This document shows positions 4,064 to 51,150 of a DNA stretch of 64,000 nucleotides, piece by piece. The DNA is from Blastocladiella emersonii ATCC 22665 (taxonomy: Eukaryota > Fungi > Blastocladiomycota): NCBI GenBank assembly GCA_025594325.1, contig JANHCV010000007.1, positions 620,001 through 684,000 on the forward strand, in the 5' to 3' direction. The first letter of the stretch is position 1. Each line of letters opens with the position of its first letter. The notes under the pieces are model-generated. The model was not told the origin of the DNA, made no database searches, and worked only from the letters and a program-made list of their open reading frames with translations. The position numbers and the translations under genes were made by a program.

Positions 4064-6848
4064 TCAGACCCGGAACCGCTGCCGGAGCGCCTGCTGGGAC
4101 GCCTGCGGGACGGCAGCGATGATGCGCTCCCACTGCTGCGGACCGCACATATCCTTGTACGCGTTGGCGACGCCGACAAACTGCTCCTCGGTCTGTGGTG
4201 CGACGACCTGGTAGTGGACGAGGGCGTCGAGGAAGACGGGGAGGACAGGGACGAGTCCCGCGGGGTTGGCCTGGATGATCTTGAGGAAGCCGAGGAACGA
4301 GGCCTCCTTTTCGGGTCCGTCGCGGGTGTTGATCATCTGCGTGGCCCACACGCCGCCGAACCGGTTGAGGTCCTTGGCGAGGAGCTCGGGCGCGATGTTG
4401 CCGAGGCGGCCGGCGGCGAGCGCGCAGTTCTCGGCGAGCATGGCGGGGGGCTCGCGGCCGTGGCGGTTGCACAGGATGGCCAGGATCCGGTCCCACAGCG
4501 CGGGCGCGACGCGCTGCATCTCGAGCCCGAGCCGGTCCGTGAGCTCGGCGCACACCCACACGGCGTTGTTGGACAGCCGCAGCCACGACTGCTCGTCCGA
4601 CGACTGGATGTAGTTGATGGCGACGGCCAAGAAATCGTGCGCGTACGGGCGCACGTGGATGAAGCTGTTGACGACCAGGTCGCCGAACATGCCGAGCGCC
4701 GACTGCTTGACGGCGGGCAGCGGGTCCTCGAGCGTGAGCTTGAGGCACGTCATGAGGTCGTGCTGGTACATCTGGACGAGCGACTCGGACGACGCGCCGA
4801 GGCCCTGCACGACGCCGGCGATCAGGTCGAGCGACACAATGTAGTAGTCGCGGTTGGGCTCGGGCACCTGGGCGGGGTTCTTGGCGTGCTCCTCGATCGC
4901 CACGTACGTCTTCTGGATGATGCGGATGCACCGCTCGACGACGCCCTTGGCCTGCGGCGAGAACCCGATGCCGAGCGCGATGGCGACGGAGGCGAGGCAC
5001 TCGAACAGGGCGAGGAGGGTCTCGTTCTCGTCGCTGAGCGCGTTCCACTGGCCCATGAGCACGGGGACGAGCACGTTGATGTACTCGGGCCGGTTGAGCT
5101 CACCCCCAACGGCCTCGGCGAGCGTCGACGTGCAGTCGTACAGCACGAGCATGTTTCGCCGCTGGTAGTGCTGGAAGCAGGTGATGAGCGTGGGCAGGAT
5201 GGCGGGGATGTAGGGCGCGATGTTGGGCCCGGCGGCCTCCTCGAGCGTCGCGAGCCCGGAGCAGCTGGCCTCCTGCACCTTCTTGTTGCCGTGCTTGCAG
5301 TTGGCGAGCAGGCCCTCGACAAACTGCGGGAGAAACGACGAGCCCTCGTAGATGATCCAGTTGGCGAACCGGCCGAGCGCCCACGCCGTGATGCTGCGGA
5401 CGAGCGGGCGGTCCTGCAGCATGTTGAGCAGGTACGGCACGAGCTGCGGCAGGTGCACGGCGATGCCCTCCATGCACCCCTCGGCCGTGGCGCCGAGCGC
5501 GAGGATCCCGGACTCGCGCACCAGCCAGTCTTTGCTCGAAAGCCGCTCGTGCAGGAGCGGGAGCAGCGTCTCGAGGATGGCGGGCCCGTACACGTTGGCG
5601 AGCGTGTCGAGGGCGGCGGCCGAGCACTTGCGCAGGGTCCACTGGTTCACGGCGTCGTCCTCGTCGTCGTCGTCGTCCATGTCGAGGTCGCTCTCGTCCG
5701 ACTCGGCCGCCGCGGCGTTCGGATCGCGCGGCGCGCTGCTGCCGCTGCTGGCGTCGTGCGACTTGCCGCGGTAGTGGCGGGGCTTGAGGTCCTGGTCGGC
5801 GTCGGGGACGTGGGCGTCGTCCTCGTCGCCGCCGAGCTCCTCGAGCTCCTCCGCGGAATACACCATGCGCGAGAGGAGCGTCGGGACGAGCTGCGGGAGG
5901 TACTGGGCGAGGGTGTCGGCGTAGTCGGGGTGCTCGGCGATGACGAGCCAGAACTCGCACGCCTCGAGGGCGATGGCGAGGTCGGCGTTCTGGGTGCAGG
6001 TGATCATGTAGGCGATGATGTCGTCGAGCTGCGCCTCGAGCTTGTCGGGGCGGAACTCGAGGATCTTGACCAGGCAGTAGCACACGGCCTTGCGCAGCTC
6101 GGCCGAGGGTTCCATGGCGCGCGAGAAGAGGCTGGGCAGGAACGCGTCGATGCCGCGGTCGACGACGTGCGTCTCGCCGTGCACGAGCTCCGAGATACTG
6201 CGGATCGCGTCGACGGCGACGCGCTCGTTGGGCGACGGGACGAGCGCCGTGAGCCGCGGCAGCAGCGTGGCCAGGGGCTGCTTGGGCGACAGGATCAGGT
6301 CGTCGCTGTCGTCCTCGCACACCTTGTGCACGGTCGACAGCGCGGCGTTGAACGCCGGGTGGGCCGGGTCGGCGAGCAGGTCGCACAGGCGCGCGAGGGC
6401 CTCGGGCCACCCGTCGATGCGGACCTGCGACAGCAGGAACGAGATGAGGGTGCCGGCGACCTTGTTCACGTCGTCGTCGCGGTCGCCCAGCACGCTCAGC
6501 ACGGCGTGCTTGACGTACTGGAGCACGGCCGGCTGCACGACGCGCAGATAGTTGATGAGGTACGACTTGAGCGCGTAGCCCGCCACGGTGCGCAGGTGCG
6601 CCGGGTGGCCCGACGTGCCGGCCAGGATCGTCGCCAGGTAGCACGGGAACTCGGGCAGGTTGGTCGCGAGGTTGTGCATTTCCTGTTGAGCGGGGATGGT
6701 CGTGGTTAGCACGGCCGGTCTGGCGCCGATCTTTTCCGCAGAACCGTACCTGCTGCACGTGGCGCTGGACCTCGTTGTCGAGGCTGTGGCCGCCGACGAG
6801 GAGGTCGGCGATCGTCGCGAGCCCTTCGGGCTGGGGCTGCCACGTCAT
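4064..6848 (-). CDS. KAP104: Transportin-1 / karyopherin beta-2 (2 exons: 6848-6750, 6682-4064)
   Basis: N-terminus MTWQPQPEGL. GT-AG intron 6749-6683 keeps the frame. HEAT repeats, ALEACEFW, acidic H8 loop followed by WTLRKCSAAALD, RESGILALGA. Confidence 0.95.
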
Positions 6849-7273
6849 GATGGTGCTGCTGCTGTTGCGGGAGGTGGCGGTGGTGGTTGCGGAATCGTGG
6901 TGTCGGCGGAATGAAGGCGGCAGGCGACGGCGGGCCGCGTGCGGGGGATCGCAGTGTGCTGACAGCGACGGCAAGCGACGAGAGTGCGTGATGCGTAGCG
7001 ATTCCGTGAGCGCGGCGACGGCGGCGGGTGCAATCCAATCCGGTCTCCAAGAAGAACGAGAGGAGGGGAGGGGAGCGAGTCGCGACGAGGCTTGCCCTGC
7101 TCTGACCACCGCGAGGCCGGCGAGCAAACGAGATGAGCGGCGTCAGCTGATCCCACCTGACGCGATTCCAGGCGCGATTTCGCGTCACCCCTGGTTGCTC
7201 TCGTTCGAGGGGAATGCCGCGAAATTTGTCCAGTATATTCCAAATGGGTCTCTCCGATATCTGACGTGGTCGC

Positions 7274-7892
7274 TTACTCGGTTGGGCCCCTACAGTCGGC
7301 GCGGCGGCCGCGTGAGTCTCGCGTCGCGTGTGATCGGGCGGCGGCGGGACGTACTCGCCGCCGGGAATGAGCTACAGGGTGAGACAGGGTCAGGTTAGCT
7401 CAGTTGGGAGAGTAGAGAGCGGGTGGGGACGCGTGCCATGACCACGGAGCTGCCGTTGAGCAGGATCTGCTTGATCTGCGTCGGGATGAGGCCGCCCGCC
7501 GCGTCGCGGGAGCTACGAGGAACTGTCAGCGACACGCCCACCGAGCAAACACGTCCCGACACGTACTACTCGACCACGTCCTCAAGGACCATGTCTACAC
7601 GGCGGAGGGCGCACTTGGTCAGCCCGACACCCCCAAGACGGCCTCGCCCGCGATACGCACTCACAAAGTCGTCGAACCCGATCAGCGTGCCGGTAAACTC
7701 CTTCTCGTTGCGCATCACCACCCATATCCGCGACCCGATGCACTTGTCGATGAGCTCTGCGTGCGGGCGAGCGTCGTCGATCGGGGAGACGGCGTCGCGT
7801 CAGTTCCAGTTCCGGTTCCCGCCAGCGGTCGGTCCATTCATGCTGATGACATTGCACCCACCGAGAGGGAGAAGCTGCGATGGATTGGCCAT
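7274..7892 (-). CDS. LSM5: U6 snRNA-associated Sm-like protein Lsm5 (6 exons: 7892-7862, 7756-7661, 7594-7567, 7512-7437, 7371-7355, 7289-7274)
   Basis: Manual splicing gives 87 aa: [52 protein letters not shown]...[21 protein letters not shown]. One intron is GC-AG. Confidence 0.93.
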
Positions 7893-40153: not shown

Positions 40154-40191
40154 GTGAGACGCGTCTCGAAATCACGTCCGGATCACGTGGG
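40154..40191 (+). promoter_or_regulatory. Conserved upstream motif GAGACGCGTCTCGAAATCACG...GATCACG (copy 1)
   Basis: Near-identical motif about 120-150 nt upstream of each LRR ATG. Confidence 0.55.
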
Positions 40192-40322: not shown

Positions 40323-42023
40323 ATGAAGCTTCATGTAACCGTTCTAGTCGAGGACATACTCGTTCGAGCGGTCCATCTCCACGACCCGATGGACGGAACT
40401 GGTCTGTTGCAGTACGCACGAGTCCTTCCGCAGAGCCAAGCACCGCGCGTCTTTCGCGCCGTCACGGAACGCGCGCTCAACGAGGTTTCTGTTGGCGACG
40501 CAGTGGCGAAAGGCCACGTCTGGGCTCTCAATTTATGGGCGGCGAGCGGTCAAACTCTTCGCATCGAGCAAGCCCAGTTCATGAAGGCTGTCCATGGCGG
40601 TCACTTTAACGTCGTGAACTGGCTGCGTCGTTCGCACATTTTTGTCAAAGAAGAGAGTCGTAATAGCGACGAGCGGAGACTGATGCGCTTGCTCTTGGAC
40701 GAGCAGCCGCCATGGTTTGAAGCCGTGCGCAGCAGTCTTGGCCCGGTGCGTCCTTGCCCGCTGCGGGCACGTTTCTTGGTCGACTTTGCTGACAAACCCT
40801 TTCCCATGATACAGGGCAGCCTCTCTTGCGCACCAGGCGACCTGCTTGCACTTCTTCTCTGTAAACGCATTGCTTCAGGCGAGACGAGCTTCCTGGAACT
40901 CAAAAATGCTCGACTGACCGAGTACGGCGCCCGCTTGCTTGCAGACGCGTTCGCCAGTCCAGCTCAACGGGTGGAGCTGATCAAGTTCAAGGATCTTTGC
41001 CTCTCATTTCCTGTGCTAGCGACGTTTGCTTTATCGAGCTCCGCGAAAGTGTTCAAGCTGTACGATGTGTTCTACGTCGAGGATGTTGCAGGCTCACCAA
41101 CTGCAATGCAGTGGCTCCCCAAAAGCGCCAAGGAGCTCTACTTTATGGGTTATAGGGACTTTCAGATGCCCAATTCAGCCCTTTACTTCCGCAACCTCCC
41201 TGATTCGCTCGAGCTGATTGATATCAACTCTCTTGACATGGACGTCGAAGACTTCGCGAACTTGGCGCATGGTATTCCCGGCAGCCTTCGCTCCCTGACC
41301 ATCATGGAGTTCTATCCTTGCCACGAGTCTTGTCAGGTCCTGATGGCACATCTTCCACCCACGCTCGAAGTGCTCAGGTTTGGGCCCGAGAAGTTTTACG
41401 CCAATACCGCACTTGCAATCGTTTCGAATCTACCACGATCTCTTCGCGAACTCGAACTTCAACTCAGTGAACTCAATTCGGATGGAGCCAAGGCTTTGGC
41501 CCTCAACATGCCACCTAAGCTCGAGATCCTACACCTAATGACGTGCGAGATTTATGGCGACGGACTACGCGAGCTTCTTGGTTCACTCCCTTCTACGCTT
41601 ACAATGCTTATTATTGAACGAGAAGCCAAGGTTACAGACGACTGCGCGGCCGCTCTCGCGCACAACTTTCCGCCGCGACTCAAGTCTCTCACCCTCGAAG
41701 GCGTAGTAGACCTGACATCAACTGGAGCGATGATACTTGCCGCGCATCTTCCCGCCGGACTCGAGATGTTGAATCTTGGGGGCAATGAGAGCATTGGTTC
41801 TGAAGCTGCGTTTCTAGTCTTTGCGAGTTCGCCCGCTTCATTGCGACATCTCTATCTGCAATCGGTTGGTTTGGATGACGCGTTTTTGAACAAGCTCAAC
41901 TGTTACATGATCGAAAACGGAAAGTCGTCGCTGCAAACACTTTCACTCAACCTTGAGCACAACGAGTTTGCCGCGGAAACTTTAGCCAAGTTTCGACCCC
42001 AAATCGATGCCAAGTTTGATTGA
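40323..42023 (+). CDS. RNI-like leucine-rich repeat protein, paralog 1 (intact; in-frame intron about 40747-40816)
   Basis: Repeats of the LPxSLxxLxL type. N-terminus MKLHVTVLVEDILVRAVHLHDP is shared with the two downstream paralogs, and the intron position is conserved. Confidence 0.8.
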   Translation: MKLHVTVLVEDILVRAVHLHDPMDGTGLLQYARVLPQSQAPRVFRAVTERALNEVSVGDAVAKGHVWALNLWAASGQTLRIEQAQFMKAVHGGHFNVVNWLRRSHIFVKEESRNSDERRLMRLLLDEQPPWFEAVRSSLGPVRPCPLRARFLVDFADKPFPMIQGSLSCAPGDLLALLLCKRIASGETSFLELKNARLTEYGARLLADAFASPAQRVELIKFKDLCLSFPVLATFALSSSAKVFKLYDVFYVEDVAGSPTAMQWLPKSAKELYFMGYRDFQMPNSALYFRNLPDSLELIDINSLDMDVEDFANLAHGIPGSLRSLTIMEFYPCHESCQVLMAHLPPTLEVLRFGPEKFYANTALAIVSNLPRSLRELELQLSELNSDGAKALALNMPPKLEILHLMTCEIYGDGLRELLGSLPSTLTMLIIEREAKVTDDCAAALAHNFPPRLKSLTLEGVVDLTSTGAMILAAHLPAGLEMLNLGGNESIGSEAAFLVFASSPASLRHLYLQSVGLDDAFLNKLNCYMIENGKSSLQTLSLNLEHNEFAAETLAKFRPQIDAKFD

Positions 42024-42056: not shown

Positions 42057-42494
42057 TCTATTTGTTACTCGTTGTGAAAAGGTTTGCCTTCTGTCTGGTT
42101 CGCCAAAGACCATTCGAGGGCTAAAGCCCTCTTTCTAGACCGGGTCGCTGCCGGATAGGGTGCCGACGCTCACGTGAGCGCCATGCACGTGAGCGACCCG
42201 AAAACGCGTGACAGACGCGTCGTTTCTCATGTGACTGCTGTGGCGCAACGCGTCCTGGCCTTGCACGTGATCGGCCTCGGCCCAACCCGCGGAAGCGCCG
42301 CGCCGCGCCAACCACTCAAGGGCGAGCGGAGCGCGTTGCACCGACTCGCGTGCCTTCGCCAGCTTCAGAGTTCAAGAGGATCGGAGCGATGTGAACGTAG
42401 GAGAACGAAAAGTACATCTTTGTGCGGGAGGAAACAAGAGTCTGCGCGAGTCTGCGCGAGGGGAATGAACAGAGTCGGGGCGGGAGCGAGTGCA

Positions 42495-43376
42495 TCAGGT
42501 CGACGAGGACAGGCGGCCGCTGCGGCGCCGCTTGGGCTGCGCCTCGTGCTCGTCGTTGACGACGCACTCCTCGTGCTCCTCCTCGGCGGCCGCGGCGGCG
42601 GTCGCCGCCGTGCGCTTCGTCGCGTTGGCGGTAGACGTCGGGACACCGGCTTGGTCGTCACCGATGGCGGCGGGCGTGCACGCCGCGAGCGCAGCGGTTG
42701 TCGGAGCCGCAGCTGCGGCCGCGTCGTCCATGTCGCACCCGACCGACACGGAGTTTGAGTCCGGCACCCCCACGACGATTTTGTCGATGCTGCCGATCGC
42801 GATGAACGAGTGCGTCCAAATGGGGTCCGCGCAGCTCGGGAAGCCGCCGTACTTCTTGGTGCCGGTGTTCTTGCCGCCGGCGTTCTTGGTGTTGGCGGGC
42901 GAGTTGATGGCGGGCGGCACGACAGCGGGCGGCTGGATCGCGTGCTCCTGCGTCACGGGCGCCGCGGCGGGCGAGACGACGGCGGCCGAGATGTTGACGG
43001 GCTGCTGGATCGTGAGCTGCTGCGCCGCGGGTTCCGCGGCAATCGAGGCGGCGACCTGCTGCACACCGTGACCAGCGGCGCCCGATGCGACGCCGTTTGC
43101 CGCGGCGCGGGCGGCCTGGTGCGCGGCGAGGTTGTTGACAAAGTTCTCGCGGCCGTCGCGCATGCACTCGTGGTACACCTCCGTGGCCTCGTTGAGCTCG
43201 GCCCGCATGCCCTTCATCGTGCGCGGCACGCCTGCCGAGGTGAAGGCCTCGTCGCCGGGGAAGCCCGGGTCGTCGTCGGATTCTGAAGAGTCCGACGCGT
43301 TCACGTCGCAGAGGAACCGCGGCTGCGGCGGTGCCGTCAGCGTCGCGCGAGCCGGAGCCGTGCTTGGCGTCGTCGG
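42495..43376 (-). pseudogene. Element A antisense accessory ORF (N-terminally truncated)
   Basis: Shares QPRFxxDV..DPxF, MxGxxxELN and KRTAA..EAxPKRRRxGR with the element B antisense ORF; no ATG. Confidence 0.7.
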
Positions 43377-43377
43377 T

Positions 43378-45891
43378 CAGTCGGAGAACGACATTGTTCT
43401 CGACCCGACTATCGTCAACTCGGACGTGGAGGGCATCCTGGCCGACAACGGCGAAACCGAGGCGAACCTCGAGCGCATCAAGAGCGTGACCTCTACGCTG
43501 ATCCCTGGAATGGGCCACGGCATGATGGGCACCCTGCTCTTCCCCGACGTGCAGCCGTTCGATGTCAACGCCGCGCCGCCGCCGCCGTACCTCGAGACGC
43601 CCATCTCGCCGACTGACGTCAAGAAAATCATGGCTCAACTATGCGCTGCCGCGGCTCAAGGTCATCCGACCGCGGATGTCGGCGCCGTACCTGTCGTTCC
43701 CGGGCCCAGGCAGCCGCCCATGATCGGTATTGTTCCCGCAGTGCCATCTGGAGCCTTGAAAAACACATCTCAGCATGGTATCGACCCGGAAATGGCCGCC
43801 GACGTGCCCGAACCAGAACTCGGACCAGCCGTCGACGTTTGGCGCAGCGCCTTCACAACCACGCCAACGGATCCTGACGCGCGCGCGCGGTTCCTCATCA
43901 CCAAGGCCGCGCACTCGATCAGCAACTTTGCCTACGACACACGCGGCGACGAGTGGAGCGACGGAAAGCAGCGCACTGTGCACACGCCCGCGTACGCGAG
44001 CCTCGCGCAGGTCTCGCTCAAGTTCAACCTCAACGAAGAGCAGCACCGCGCGTTCGTGCTCTTCCTCATGCCGCTCATCGACATCTTCATCGGCGGCAAC
44101 GCGGGTATCGCTCGGCCGAGCAGAACGTGATCCTGTTGGGCCGCGACAACGTCCAACATGTCGTCGGCACCGCGGCCCTCCCGCCCATGAGCAAGGACCG
44201 GACGCCGATCATCCTCACCGGCTTGGGCGGCACGGGCAAGTCGCGCGTCGTCGATGCAATCCGATACTTTCTCGCGTCCTGGAACCGGGAAAGTGCCTCA
44301 TGGTCATGGCCATGACCGGGATCGCGGCCGCCAACATTGGCGGTACGACCATCCACGCCGCGTTCTCTTTTTCGCTAAGGCCGAAAGAAAACAGCCCGGA
44401 CGTGGCCCGTTTGCGTACCGATCCTGCGGTTGCCATCGCGTGGAAAGGGCGTCTCGGCGTCGCCATCGACAAGTTCTCCATGTGCGATGCGACTTTACTC
44501 GGCCGTATCGACGCGAACCTGCGCCTCCTGCGGCGGTGCGACGAACCATTCGGCAGGTGCATCGTCATGCTCGCTGGCGATCATTTACAGCTGCCTCCCG
44601 TCAACGGAACTGCCCTGTACAAGGTGCCCGCCGTGCTCAACGACGCGCCGGACTCGTTCTACCTGCGCATGACGTCAAATCAATTGACGGTCCCCGAGCA
44701 CGTGGATCGAGGCCAGGTCGCGTACTGGCGCACTACACGCGCTGTTCGTCTCTTGAAGAGCAACCGATTTGTCGACGATCCACCATGGGGCAACGAAATG
44801 GACGCGCTCCGCCTCGTCGAGGCGTCGGACACGCTGTGCGACCTGATCAACTCGCGTACGAACACTCAGCTTCAGCAGCAGGTCGACGAAAACGGCAACA
44901 ACATCCTCAAGGAGATCCTCAAGAAGCCCGGACTCAAGGTTATCGCGCCCGACAACCACACGCGCCACGCCTTCAACCTGCTCTACACGCGGCTCGCAGC
45001 AGCAAACCCGAACCGCGTCGTGTTCCAGATCAAGGGCAACATCACGCGCCCGCGTGATAGGCGCCGCACGCGTGAACGCGTCGCCATCTGCGACAAGGAC
45101 GTGTTCCGCCTCGGAGGAGAGCCAGAAACCACGACTGAACTGCCGGCCATCCTCGAGCTCTTCGTCGGAATGGAGATGCGCGTCAAGACCAACCAGTGCG
45201 TAGCAAAGGGGTGCGCGAATGGTGCGGTTGGCGTCGTGCACCACATCGACTGGAAGCCCGAGACCACGTTCACGCGAACCGCGTCCAACATGTACCGGCC
45301 ATCCTGCGCTCCACTCAACGTGTGGATCGACCTGCCCGACGCTCCTCGTGGCCCTCGCTTCCCGGGCATGCCGGCCGCGTGGCCTGACACGGTCATCCCG
45401 CTTGCCGTGGAGAAGAAGGACTTCCTGTACATGGCGGGCAGTTCCACGTCGCGAGAGCGGGTCGTCAGCACAACGGGGGATTCGCTCCCGCTCTGTGTCA
45501 ACAACACCAAAACCAACAGGAGCAAGTATCCTAATCATGTCGTTGCGCACATCAAGCAGTACCCGATGGTACCAGCCTTCGCCATGACCCAAGAGCCGTG
45601 CTCAAGTCCTTGAAGCCGGATCCACTCGCAGTGGCCGAGGACAAGCGGCTCCAGATGCTCGGCGAGCTGACCAAGACCGCTTTCGATCAAGGTACAGCCA
45701 TCGCACCAGGCGACCCGCGCATCGCCAAGCTCTTCGACGACGCGATTCTCTTCTCGCGCCAGCACGCGGCTGAGAAGCTAGTCACCAAGCGCGCGTCAGA
45801 TGCTCTCAACGCAAGGTTTTGGCGATTGGCCAAGAAACGTGCTGGAGGCGAGGACGGCTCACAGAACGCCAAGAAACAGAAAACACAGTAG
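43378..45891 (+). pseudogene. Element A PIF1-family helicase (RepHel C-terminal part), disrupted
   Basis: LNEEQHRAF, GLGGTGKS, MTGIAAANIGGTTIH, IDKFSM (Walker B E->K), GDHLQLPPV, VGMEMRVKTN..CANG, YPMVPAFAMT. Frameshifts near 44105 and 44290; motifs V-VI deleted. Confidence 0.88.
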
Positions 45892-46332
45892 AGTATTAAC
45901 GTAGTGTATTCCATCATCTAATCCGTCAATAGCACGATTTCCATAGCTCGATCACCTAAATCTCCTGTGCGGGACGCACGGGACAGCACCTCCACCAGAC
46001 GTGCACCATACGGGGCGGGGGCTTTAGCCCTCGATTGAAAGCCAAACGCGAAGCGTTTAGGTGCCTCAAGTATAATTTGTTATCGAGGGCTAAAGCCCTC
46101 TATTTTTGCCTAGCCGACGCGCGTCCTTGGGATCTGACGTGTCTCCCTGGCCCACGTGCGTCACGCACGTGTTTCACGGGATATAACCAACGCGTCTGAG
46201 TCTCCCACCACCAAGCTCTCTCGCCTGCAGTCAATCGTGATAGTAACAAAAAAAAATCAAGTATTGTGAATGAGAGGACAGCAACAACAAAGGAGGGAAA
46301 CGGAGGAAGTGGAGAGAGGAACACGACGTCGT

Positions 46333-47325
46333 TCAGTTAACTGAACGGCGGCCACCGCCACGGCCGCGGCGACGCTTGGGCATCGCCTCGAACTCGTCCT
46401 CGTCGTCGTCACCGCCCTCTTCGGCGGCCATGGCGGCCGTGCGCTTGGGCGCGTCAGCAGGAACGGCCGTGGCCAACGCGACCCCGCGATCCGTCGTGCC
46501 CGCCTCCTCAATGATGGGCGCCGCGAGCGCGACTGTCGCACTTGAAGTCGACGACGACGACAATGACGACGACGACGACGCGGCCGACGACGCGGCCGAC
46601 GAGCCGACCGGCGGCCCGGCGGGCTGTACGGCGGTCGAGAGCGTCGAGGTCGACAACGACGAGGCGACGGTCGCGTCGACCTGCGAAAGGGCGGGCTGCA
46701 CGGCGGTCGAGGATGACGACGACGCGTTGGTGATCTGCGGTGCGGCGGTCTGCACGGCCGTCGTTGAGGAGGACGACGAGGCGACGCCGTCGTTGAGCTC
46801 GCGCAGGATCCCCGCCATGCGCGTCGTGAACTTGGGGTCCGAGTCGCCCTCCTCGTCGGACACGTCAAACACGAACCGCGGCTGGCGCACGGGCGAGGAC
46901 AGCGCCAGCCCCGACAGCTGCGTGGCTGGGGTCGGCGGGATGGACTCCTGCGGGCGGGCGCCGTACGGGTTGCTGCGGCCCGCGGGACCGCCGTGATGGT
47001 GCGCCGGCGGCGGCAGAGCGGGCGCCGACGACGAGCCCGCGGGACCACCGTGATGGTGATGGTGATGGTGGGCCGGCGGCGGGACGGCGGGCGCCAACGA
47101 CGAAGAGGGGGTCGACGGCGGGTTGAAGGACGCGGCCGTCGACGGCTGCTGCGGCGGGACGGCGGGCGTTGACGAAGAGGCGGGCGCCGACGACGAGGAA
47201 GAGGGGGTGGAGGGCGGGTTGAAGTACGAGGCCGGCGGGGGCATGGCGGGCGCCGTGGGCGCCGAAGGCGGCGGCGCCGGCTTGGTGATCTGCTGCTGCT
47301 GCTGCAGCTGCACCTGCGCAATGAA
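46333..47325 (-). pseudogene. Element B antisense accessory ORF (S/P/A-rich, C-terminal NLS-like motif, N-terminally truncated)
   Basis: Open frame of more than 326 aa, homologous motifs to the element A ORF, followed by a pyrimidine-rich host-like 3' UTR. Confidence 0.7.
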
Positions 47326-47349
47326 GTCACATAGCGGCCGCCGGGATCT

Positions 47350-50300
47350 TCTCGCACAAGTTCGCGCCGCTGCTACTGTACCAGGCGATGCCGTGGCTCG
47401 ACCTCACGGGCGTCGCCGCTGGCGAGGTGTCCGAGCAGGATGTCGAGTGCATCGCAAGCACCATCAGCGTTGACGGCAAGCCGATGCTCAACGTCGCGCT
47501 GCACGACTACGTGTTCCGCCCGCCCGAGCTCGAGAATCTGTTGTGGTACGAGTTTATCTCCTCGTGGTCGCGCGTCAACATGCCGCCGAAAATGCACGAG
47601 GTCCTCGCCAACGGCGGGCGCGTCGTGCCCGCGCAAGCAGAACTCGGGCCAGCTGCCGACATGCCGCCCGGCACGAGGCTGTCCTTCATGGCCGACCACC
47701 CGCAGGCCAAGACGCACGAGCTGCGCAAGAACATCGTCGAGGTCGTGCCCAAAATCGTCGGCCCGCACATGCCCGACCCGGGCAAGTTTGGCGACGTGCC
47801 CAGGTCCGAGGAAAAAGTACTCGCGCATGGCGCTGCTGCTGCTCCGCCATTTCCGCGTCTCGAGTGACATTCTCAACGAGAACGGCTCGGCGATCGCCAA
47901 GTTCAAGGCGTTCAAGAAGGGCCTCCAACCCGGCGACCCTGCGCTCAACCACCTCGAGTACGCCCAGGAGTACTACTTCAGTCTCGACGGTGCGCGCGCG
48001 TACCGTGAGTGCCGCGATCGCGAGAACGCCGAGCTCTCGGCCAGGCTGTCGCAGGAGGAGCGCGGCGAGCTGTTCGTTCCATCTCGCGACGGCGACCGCA
48101 ACGCGTCAAGCTCGCGCGCCAAGGCAACCGCCAACGAGGACCCGACTGCAGAATGGACCATGTTCACTCAGTCGCAGCAGGACATTGCCCTCGATCTGGT
48201 CATTGCCAACAACGCCGTGAACGGTGCTGGCGCCGAGGTCGCGCCCACCGTTAGCGAGCAGAACTTCAAGCTGGTGATCGACGCGCTGGTCCCTGGTGCT
48301 GCTGCAGACCTGGTCGACCACCTGCGCCTCCCTCCAGTGCGCCCGTTCGACGTCAAGGCGGCCGTCCCACCGACGACGCTCAAGGAGCCCATTTCGGCGA
48401 ACACGCTGAAAAGATTCCTGGCGCAGCACCGCAGCGCCGCATCTGCAGCGCCGGCCGCTGCTGGAACAGCTCCTGTCGCTCCGCAAGGCGGGCAGTCGCC
48501 GCTCGTCGGCGCGTCAACCACGTCAGACGCTGCTGCCGAGTCGCAGATCGGCGTCGATCCTGAAAACGTCGTTGAGGACGGTCCAGCAGCGCCAGAAGTA
48601 CCCGCCGCCGACGTTTGGCGCGGTACCTTCGCCGCGAGATCAACGGAATCTGCAGCGAAGCGCAAGCTGTTCCTCGTCATGAAGGCTGCGGACTCGCTCA
48701 ACAACTTTGACCACGCGACTCGCGGCAAGGAGTGGACGGAGGCGGAGCAGCGCACCAAGCACACGCCGGCGTACGCGAGCCTCGCGCAGGTTTCGCTCAA
48801 GTTCAACCTGAACAAGGAGCAGCACCGCGCGTTTGTGCTCTTCCTCATGCCGCTCATCGCCACGTTCATTGGCGGCGACAGCGGTGTTGTCGAGGCCGCC
48901 GCGTCATCGGATCCAGGCGCCCTCGCGTCGGGCCGCGACCGGCCAAACGCACCAGCTCTCGCCTCGCTTCCGCCCATGAGCAAGGATCGCTCGCCGATCA
49001 TTCTCACAGGCTCAGGCGGCACGGGCGGCACGGGCAAGTCGCGCGTCATTGACGCGATCCGGTACTTTCTCGCGTCCTGGAACCGCGAAAAGTGCATGAT
49101 GGTCATGGCCATGACGGGCATCGCTGCCGCCAACATTGGCGGTACCACCATCCACGCCACGTTCCAGCTCTCGCTCAAGGGGGAGAGTCTCAGCCCCGAC
49201 ATCCAGCGCATCCGCACCGACTCTGCTGTCGCCAGCGCGTGGCAAGGACGTCACGCCGTGATCATCGACGAGTTCTCCATGTGCGACGCGCAGGTGCTCG
49301 GACGGGTCGACGCGAGCCTTCGCGACCTGCGTCGGTGCGACGAGCCGTTTGGCGGGTGCATCGTCATGCTCGCCGGCGACCATTTGCAGCTTCCACCAGT
49401 GAACGGCACGGCGCTGTTCCAGCTACCCGAGGTGCTCGACGATGCGCCAGACTCGTCCTTCGAGCGGCTGCTCGCGTACGACACCACGGGCGCGAAAAAA
49501 AAAGAAGCACTCGGGCCAGCTCGCGTACTGGCGCGCGCGACGTGTCGTTCGACTCGTGCGCAGCAACCGGTTCGTCAACGACCCATCATGGGCCAGGTGT
49601 CTCGACGCGTTCCGCCTCGACAAGGCCCCCGACGAGCTGCGCCGCCCGCTCGACTCGCGCACGACCGCTCGCCTGCGCCAGCTGAGCGACGACCAGGACA
49701 ACAACGAGCTCAAGAAGATCCTCCAGACGCGCGGGCTCACAGTCATTGCGCCCGACAACTACACGCGTCACACCTTTAACCTGCTGTACACGCGGCTCGC
49801 CGCTGCGGACCCAGAACGCGTCGTGTTTCAGATCAAGGCCAGCATCACGCGCAAGAAGGAGCGAAACGGCGCAACCGTCCGCCTCCCGAATGGCGAAAGG
49901 GACCTGTTCCGTCTCGCCGAGGAGCCCGACTCGATCACTCGTTTGCCAACCATCCTCGAGGTCTTTGTCGGCATGGAATTGCGCGTCAAGGTCAACCAGT
50001 GCGTCGAGAAGGGGTGCGCGAATGGCGCTATCGGCGTCGTGCACCACATCGACTGGTTTCCGGGCACAACGTTTACCGAGATCGGCTCGCGCATGTACTG
50101 CTCATCGCGGGAGCCACATACTGTGTGGATCGACCTGCCCGACGCGCCACCTGGCCCTCAGTTTCCTGGCATGCCGGCCGATTGGCCAGACACGGTCATC
50201 CCGCTCGTCATGCACTCGGACGACTTTCTCTACAAGGAGGGCGGTATGACGTCGCGCGAGCGAACCGAACCCAAGAAACCTGAGTCCAGCGCACTGTGCG

Positions 50301-50860
50301 CCAAGATGGTCAAGAACTTCGATATTCACGAGCAGTACAAGGACCACGAAAAGGTCAAGATCAAGCAGTTCCCAATCGTGCCCGCCTTTGCGATGACGGT
50401 GCACGGGGTCCAAGGCGTGACCAAGAACGCCATCATCTTGACGGATCCGTGCCCAGCTGGCTCGTCGGGATCAATCAACGGGTCGTCGCTGTACGTTGCG
50501 CTCTCGCGGCTCCGCGAGAGCGCGTTCCTGTGGGTTCTCCATCCGATCCCGGACAGCGTGTACGACGCCATGGTCCCTGATCCGCGGGCCGTGGCCGAAG
50601 ACTTGCGGCTCCAGGCGCTAGACGTGTTGACTGAGGGCGCGTTCGCTCACGGACAAACCGTTACGCAAAACCACCCCCGAGTCGCGGAGCTCTTTTGCAA
50701 CGCGATGCAAGAGCACCGCCAGATCAAGAGCGACAAGGAGGCGAAGCAGAAGGCGCGCGACCAAGAGTACTCGAGGCGGTATCGCGAGCGTAAGCGCGAG
50801 CAGAAGCGCGCTCCAGAATTGCATGAGCAGCGGCGGAGCAAGAGGCTTCGCGAGATTTAG
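47350..50860 (+). pseudogene. Element B RepHel linker + PIF1 helicase with two +1 A-run frameshifts
   Basis: FSHKF, HDYVFRPPELENLLWYEF, DHPQAKTHEL, VPKIVGP, GGTGKS, IIDEFSM, GDHLQLPPV, FPIVPAFAMTVHGVQG, LYVALSR. Frame shifts at A5 (about 47812) and A9 (about 49495). Confidence 0.88.
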
Positions 50861-51111
50861 TGTAAGTTTTCATTTGTAGTGTTTTAAAGTATACTTAGCT
50901 GCTTTCAATTATTTTGGTGTGTGATGGGAACAGAGATGCGACTCCATAATGACGCGCGACTGTCAGCGGTACAAAACCTCCCGCGTGTGCCGTGCTCCAA
51001 CGTGGCGGAGGGCTTTAGCCCTCGATTGAAGACCAGACGCGAAGCGTCTAGGTGGTTCAAGTAAAATGGTCTCCAATTGTTTTGCGAAGTGGCTGTGACG
51101 CGTCTCACGCC

Positions 51112-51150
51112 GTGAGACGCGTCTCGAAATCACGCCATGATCACGTGTGG
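51112..51150 (+). promoter_or_regulatory. LRR upstream motif (copy 2)
   Basis: GTGAGACGCGTCTCGAAATCACG...GATCACG, about 120 nt before ATG 51256. Confidence 0.55.

Follow-up and report, generated by a model that had tools for sequence, protein, structure and literature searches.

A probable accessory gene, antisense to the helicase, in two diverged lineages of Helitron2-like elements of Blastocladiella emersonii

PIF/Harbinger elements are two-gene DNA transposons in which a non-catalytic nuclear Myb-like partner assists the transposase. In the rolling-circle transposons of eukaryotes, non-catalytic partner proteins are very poorly known. Helitron2 elements have been described as encoding a single RepHel open reading frame (ORF), while accessory genes for RPA-like, OTU, SET and hypothetical proteins have been reported in Helentrons and plant Helitrons (PMC4067079), and Fanzor1 occurs in Helitron2 non-autonomous elements (PMC3627910). 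Taken together, the accessory proteins of Helitrons and Helentrons include RPA70-like proteins, OTU cysteine proteases, AP endonucleases, SET proteins and Fanzor1/TnpB; some are conserved across families and have been proposed to aid transposition (PMC4067079, PMC3627910). Two further cases come from fungi. FoHeli3, a Helitron2-like element of Fusarium oxysporum, has an extra ORF upstream of the transposase and in the opposite orientation, which is domain-less and found only in Helitrons (Chellapan et al., 2016; PMC5148889). HELPO1 of Pleurotus ostreatus carries the genes capA-capF, which are of unknown origin and in some cases expressed; capA and capA2 are 45% similar (Castanera et al., 2014; PMC4289320). 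Here we describe a minus-strand ORF carried by each of two Helitron-like elements in a 64,000-nucleotide stretch of DNA (the window; 65% GC) from the Blastocladiella emersonii ATCC 22665 assembly GCA_025594325.1 (contig JANHCV010000007.1).

The two elements, A (42114-46076) and B (46083-51067), form a diverged head-to-tail pair, about 4.8 kb apart. Each has one ORF on the minus strand pointing to the 5' terminus of its element, as the original prediction for this locus had stated (ORF A and ORF B, Table 1). Our best explanation, to which we assign a probability of roughly 0.7, is that these ORFs are truncated copies of a genuine, lineage-restricted gene of a Helitron2-like (RepHel) family, which lies head-to-head with RepHel, predates the split between the A and B lineages and has been kept under constraint. 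The frame, the codon usage and a few short motifs would have stayed constrained, and the linkers would have diverged freely.

The ordered motifs that had been quoted for the two ORFs are all present, in the same order in both. Motif 1 has the shared pattern QPRF..DV, followed by an acidic tract and DP.F; motif 2 has the pattern M.G...ELN; and a C-terminal module follows. Between the motifs, full alignment reveals weak collinear similarity. A candidate fourth shared motif (AAQYTQP.. vs AAIQYVEP..) had an E value of 0.8 and was dropped. In the mechanical ORF list ORF A spans 42495-43304; its frame stays open to 43376, and motif 1 lies upstream of every ATG. From the ATG at 47244, ORF B encodes 303 residues and is an annotated gene in the assembly.

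Homology of the two ORFs, also part of the original prediction, is supported by permutation (z 5.4-6.5); the two copies occupy matching positions, in the same orientation, in diverged lineages of one Helitron family. The local score between A and B was 118, against 66.7 +/- 9.5 for shuffles within 15-residue windows, and was reached by 0 of 1000 shuffles; the chain score was 198, against 125 +/- 12, and was reached by 0 of 500. Reversed sequence gave a local score of 63 and a chain score of 96. Of the 18 same-strand pairings of frames across this DNA the proposed one ranks first (z 5.4 and 6.5), and it is the sole same-frame pair without stops in both A and B.

We then examined relatives of the two ORFs. 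A word-based protein search with both returned B. emersonii proteins only: four relatives of ORF B (P0001-P0004, 73-86% identical) and two of ORF A (P0005 and P0006, 90-94% identical). Annotated homologues are held by seven loci (L001-L007), and an eighth (L008) was reached via its RepHel fragment. Co-occurrence with the element was one of the checks proposed for the gene: at all eight further loci an element of type A or B contains the ORF, beside the element's own 5' terminus and antisense to the helicase. Position and orientation thus hold in ten copies, and the annotated homologues are inside elements in six of six cases. The word-based search of both ORFs found no host paralogue outside the elements, such as an ordinary, unlinked host gene family would have had. 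The dispersed copies share exact ends, homology to eight other loci stopping at 42114, 46076/46083 and 51067.

Outside B. emersonii no homologue was found, either for the N-terminal domain described below by an exhaustive HMMER search of 1.84 billion representatives or for the full ORFs, which were covered by the word-based search only. The only real match in the HMMER search was the B. emersonii paralogue cluster; the bacterial tandem-repeat proteins P0009 and P0010 also appeared and were rejected as artefacts of twelve weak repeated matches. With E values up to 1 allowed, Pfam gave no match for any of four sequences (ORF A, ORF B, P0001 and P0005), and in them it detected no domain of the known accessory families (RPA-like, OTU, AP endonuclease, SET, Fanzor/TnpB). 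The protein has no sequence match in the PDB, and feature searches of the ESM Atlas gave scores of 0.78 and 0.66, below a meaningful level.

The carriers themselves encode a PIF1-like helicase (PF05970) on the plus strand, with E values of 3e-15 in A and 3e-26 in B; according to Pfam, the Rep domain is absent from the plus strand of both. The RepHel remnant of element B is homologous to a canonical RepHel and to the RepHel fragment at L006, an A-type copy that is more complete. At L006 this fragment starts at the Rep tyrosine motif and aligns (E 3e-21) to residues 930-1223 of a canonical protein with Helitron_like_N (PF14214) and PIF1 (PF05970) domains. Both the L006 and the L008 fragments begin at a Y-x-x-K-Y-x-x-K-type motif and retain only the tail of an otherwise lost Rep, and an HUH motif was found in none of the copies examined. 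The PIF1-like helicase, the Rep-tail alignment of L006 and the terminal palindromes together identify the carriers, as far as such features can, as Rep-deleted Helitrons with Helitron2-like ends.

Some of these copies retain more of the gene than the window does. In window B, L002 and L003 the ORF is joined at 47328-47335 straight to the post-Rep part of RepHel. In L001, L004 and L005 the second half of the helicase (window 49344 onward) is joined to ~380 bp missing from window B, which lengthen the ORF by a 135-residue N-terminal domain. That these ~380 bp are antisense RepHel sequence was considered and rejected, with no significant match by blastn, tblastx or blastx. The annotated ATG and first eight residues of P0001 (L001:10001-10024), on the other hand, are antisense helicase sequence at the deletion junction; this N-terminus of the gene model is fortuitous, and the position of its ATG suggests that the true N-terminus of the accessory protein is probably still missing. 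The recovery of the full N-terminus from autonomous copies, which had been proposed, was therefore achieved in part: the 135-residue domain came from B-type derivatives, and no full-length autonomous copy was recovered.

The A-type copies L006 and L008 have the Rep tail within ~200 bp of the upstream end of the ORF, and window A has a distinct breakpoint at 43376. Both window copies lost the 5' part of the gene in the same deletions that removed Rep. Presumably they also lost the promoter, and both are most likely inactive relics. The ancestral element would have had the order 5' end, accessory gene (minus strand), intergenic region, RepHel (plus strand) and 3' end, with the two genes head-to-head; independent internal deletions would then have removed Rep and the head of the accessory gene.

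How long the gene has been carried can be judged from the helicase, whose parts share 74-89% nucleotide identity and 46-71% protein identity between A and B, with a synonymous divergence (dS) of ~0.7 and a dN/dS of 0.3-0.6. Despite this divergence, both lineages keep an open frame with a GC content at third codon positions (GC3) near 0.9. The most serious alternative is that the ORFs are passenger cargo: the ancestor of A and B would have captured a host gene, or part of one, that has no role in the element and whose ORF and motifs survive only by inertia. Gene capture is a known property of Helitrons, and those of fungi carry expressed genes whose origin is unknown (PMC4289320); the codon bias (GC3 0.88-0.93) is also more host-like than that of RepHel (0.73-0.80), and the present copies decay roughly neutrally. 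At a helicase dS of ~0.7, however, neutral cargo should have lost its open frame, codon bias, period-3 composition and motifs, and both lineages keep all of these, while no host paralogue lies outside the elements in our search. We thus regard passenger cargo as unlikely, and the retained frame and codon bias argue that the gene is old in the family and has been kept under constraint. The gene is not a recent random capture, a reading that the original prediction had also disfavored.

Comparisons within each lineage point the same way for omega, which is lowest in the proposed frame (0.2-0.5 in A and mostly 0.56-0.73 in B). It is ~1 in B pairs that involve the deletion-laden L005; other frames give about 0.5-3, mostly near or above 1. 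Between the lineages only short motifs can be aligned while the frame and the period-3 composition are kept, a pattern that fits a disordered protein with short linear motifs.

Coding potential was evaluated by base composition and with a codon-usage log-odds model trained on six Pfam-verified host genes. The GC content at codon positions 1/2/3 (GC1/2/3) is 0.67/0.58/0.90 in ORF A, 0.64/0.67/0.88 in ORF B and 0.63/0.45/0.93 in the N-terminal domain of P0001, and 0.64/0.47/0.95 in a Pfam-verified ion-channel host gene of the window. In a leave-one-out test of the codon model true frames received +0.34 to +0.67 bits per codon, compared with -0.10 to -0.28 for the best antisense frame. The proposed frame is the best scorer of the six. 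ORF A scores +0.32 bits per codon, with a 95% interval of 0.21-0.60 for the gap to the best antisense frame, and the N-terminal domain scores +0.49. Sliding scores are positive from the deletion junction (about 43340 and 47340) and turn negative just past the stop codon, where the coding signal is lost in a CT-rich, lower-GC tail. At L001 they reach 0.4-0.75 bits per codon across the N-terminal domain, the signal beginning abruptly at the junction.

These data also bear on a second alternative, namely that there is no gene, the ORFs being chance frames in 65% GC DNA and the conserved islands cis-acting DNA such as transposition signals or the RepHel promoter. Long spurious ORFs are indeed common in the window, a composition-corrected BLASTP comparison of the two ORFs falls short of significance (E 0.15), and the DNA alignment of A and B consists of short motif islands and the terminal hairpin only. 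Against this, only the ORFs show strong period-3 composition and codon usage like that of the host, conservation peaks in one frame, and the truly non-coding element ends score -0.7 to -1.2 bits per codon in every frame. In addition, the isolated mismatches between A and B in conserved runs fall at third codon positions in five of five cases, two of them (in KRTAA), or three counting PKRRR, within the span of the C-terminal module. We consider a non-genic origin very improbable. Period-3 composition, codon score and third-position mismatches indicate instead that ORFs A and B represent a real minus-strand coding gene, although most weakly for the low-complexity part of ORF B. The claim of a gene rather than a chance ORF is thereby upheld, with GC3 at 0.88-0.90 and a codon score that is positive only between junction and stop. 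Least probable of all is coding on the plus strand, in which the frame sharing third positions would be an upstream exon or N-terminal extension of RepHel: this frame is partly open (193 and 206 codons) and inherits the same GC3 and some conservation (z 2.8-2.9), but it contains one stop in A and four in B over the span, and more opposite the L001 N-terminal domain, it scores about -0.1 bits per codon vs +0.07 to +0.49 for the minus frame, and a GC1 above GC2 is seen only when ORF A and the N-terminal domain are read on the minus strand.

The product of the lineage-restricted gene is mostly disordered. Ser, Thr, Pro, Ala, Gln and Gly make up 55% of ORF A and 67% of ORF B, and the N-terminal domain is 41% hydrophobic. 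AlphaFold, at low confidence, places strands in the N-terminal domain and a sole helix over the DP.F..M.G...ELN region (motif 2, P0001 model). A fuller product would have at least about 450 residues. It would begin with the N-terminal domain, hydrophobic and probably rich in beta strands, of which only some of the B-type deletion derivatives retain a copy. The rest would be a long Ser/Thr/Pro/Ala/Gln-rich disordered region carrying QPRF-x-x-DV, the acidic Ser-rich tract and DP-x-F, then the short helix M-x-G-x-x-x-ELN, and ending in KRTAA, an acidic stretch and PKRRR.

The C-terminus had been called similar to a bipartite nuclear localization signal (NLS). This does not hold, since KR and PKRRR are separated by 22 residues in B and by 27 in A, vs the classical 10-12. 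PKRRR by itself fits the monopartite NLS pattern K-(K/R)-x-(K/R) and occurs C-terminally in both types and in most of the copies, as a sequence match only. We infer that the protein enters the nucleus via this basic C-terminus. There it would act as an adaptor of the element, its acidic motif docking a host factor or RepHel, and docking would help transposition or blunt host silencing. We take the hydrophobic-acidic motif to be at best reminiscent of acidic docking motifs, for example SUMO-interaction motifs. A more specific proposal is that the family is a two-protein transposon in which RepHel requires the largely disordered nuclear protein, which could serve as an adaptor for import or tethering or could suppress silencing by the host; we put this forward tentatively, as more probably wrong than right. 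If true, the protein would resemble the Myb-like partner of Harbinger in its role while being an unrelated and so far undescribed protein. No Myb/SANT domain was detected in it, and a sub-threshold language-model neighbour (score 0.50-0.60) was not counted as evidence.

Several points weigh against a constrained accessory gene with a role in the element. For the low-complexity part of ORF B the codon score is only +0.07 bits per codon, and its gap to the antisense frame (95% interval -0.03 to 0.36) is not significant when taken alone. Variable columns within lineages are distributed over the codon positions as 42/39/48 and 10/9/17, with no third-position excess, counts that we judged uninformative for copies decaying after insertion. 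Several copies have frameshifts (L002, L003, L004) or a stop (L006), or are truncated (L005, L007); those of L001 (10001-11377) and L008 are intact. Together with the missing third-position excess, the lesions indicate that present copies are decaying. The head-to-head layout and the N-terminus are reconstructed from deletion derivatives, and the AlphaFold models are unreliable, with a mean pLDDT (predicted local distance difference test) of 34-37 in both. The adaptor role proposed here is hypothetical, and the anti-silencing, regulation and targeting roles proposed originally are guesses.

Other features of these loci are as follows. Relative to the A-type copies of L002, L006 and L007, element A lacks ~150 bp at window 45588. 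L002 (6190-15305) is a second A+B head-to-tail composite, 96.4% (A) and 94.6% (B) identical to window 42114-51067, and homology ends exactly at its outer ends. Since these exact outer ends are common to both composites, the pair seems to have moved as a single unit. A solo B copy (L003) lies 37 kb away on the same contig as L002 and encodes the identical protein P0002. Window B and this solo copy remain homologous for 45 bp beyond the 3' end of the element (window 51068-51112 vs L003:6149-6190), and window 51112-51147 resembles 40154-40189 (91.7%); these similarities may reflect a shared flank or a preferred target sequence.

The element pair is flanked by a gene with leucine-rich/FNIP repeats (window 40323-42023, plus strand). 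Its GC3 is only 0.59, compared with 0.84-0.95 in the Pfam-verified host genes of the window, and its codon-usage score, unlike theirs, is negative; the gene may be of recent or foreign origin, or in decay. At L004 the 3' end of a B-type Helitron derivative (L004:8294-11530) is ~500 bp away from an annotated gene of 649 residues (5762-7807, minus strand) with PF07282 (Cas12f1-like_TNB, TnpB/Fanzor-like). On Logan contig SRR15309533_2994 a divergently oriented ORF (L009:2-814, minus strand) lies upstream of an unrelated canonical RepHel (Helitron_like_N and PIF1, 1716 residues), a further head-to-head layout. This ORF, which is cut by the contig end, was considered as a relative and rejected, being helix-turn-helix-like (weak HTH_28 and HTH_23 matches) and unrelated.

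Table 1. Coordinates, within the window, of the features of elements A and B.
Feature	Position	Strand	Remarks
5'-terminal non-coding region, element A	42114..42494	-	Downstream of ORF A stop; homology to other copies ends at 42114; codon score negative
Hairpin GAGGGCTAAAGCCCTC, 5' end of element A	42116-42131		
ORF A, A-type accessory gene	42495..43376	-	293 codons open; first ATG 43217; 5'-truncated at deletion junction near 43376
C-terminal module in A	42522..42617	-	KRTAA (42603-42617), acidic stretch, PKRRR (42522-42536)
Motif 2 in A	43191..43217	-	MKGMRAELN
Motif 1 in A	43260..43325	-	QPRFLCDV, then Ser/Asp-rich acidic tract, DPGF
RepHel remnant, element A	43132..45613	+	PIF1-like helicase PF05970, frameshifted, without Rep
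3' end, element A	46000..46076	+	Hairpin core GGGCTTTAGCCC at 46019-46030
5'-terminal non-coding region, element B	46083..46332	-	Downstream of ORF B stop; palindrome GAGGGCTAAAGCCCTC at 46085-46100
ORF B, B-type accessory gene	46333..47313	-	326 codons; first ATG 47244; 5'-truncated at junction 47328-47335
C-terminal module in B	46366..46446	-	KRTAA (46432-46446), acidic stretch, PKRRR (46366-46380)
Motif 2 in B	46792..46818	-	MAGILRELN
Motif 1 in B	46828..46884	-	QPRFVFDVSDEEGDSDPKF
RepHel remnant, element B	47388..50860	+	Post-Rep region and PIF1-like helicase, three frames, no Rep domain
3' end, element B	50991..51067	+	Hairpin core at 51010-51021

The persistence of a second gene while two lineages diverged points to a role in the element and makes this gene a candidate for transposition and silencing assays. 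It also allows annotated "hypothetical proteins" of an early-diverging fungus to be assigned to transposons. The significance is limited in that the window copies are relics and analogous orphan ORFs have been reported in fungal Helitrons.

Among known systems, the mechanism proposed here is closest to the two-gene model of PIF/Harbinger, which belongs to a different superfamily. The known accessory proteins of Helitrons and Helentrons are, like the product of the B. emersonii gene, second proteins of rolling-circle transposons, although their domains were not detected here. The cap genes of HELPO1 have, like this gene, diverged between subfamilies in some cases; they lie downstream of RepHel, however, and their expression has been shown, whereas the B. 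emersonii gene is known from its sequence alone. The closest case is the extra ORF of FoHeli3, which, compared by description only, matches in position, orientation and orphan status. The original prediction did not recognize the gene as a described Helitron component; its kind was already described in FoHeli3 (PMC5148889). The two hosts belong to different phyla, Ascomycota for FoHeli3 and Blastocladiomycota for B. emersonii, and unlike the FoHeli3 ORF the B. emersonii gene is common to two diverged lineages between which only motifs are conserved. It would thus add to a kind of gene already known in fungal Helitrons, with unusually clear sequence evidence for long-term retention.

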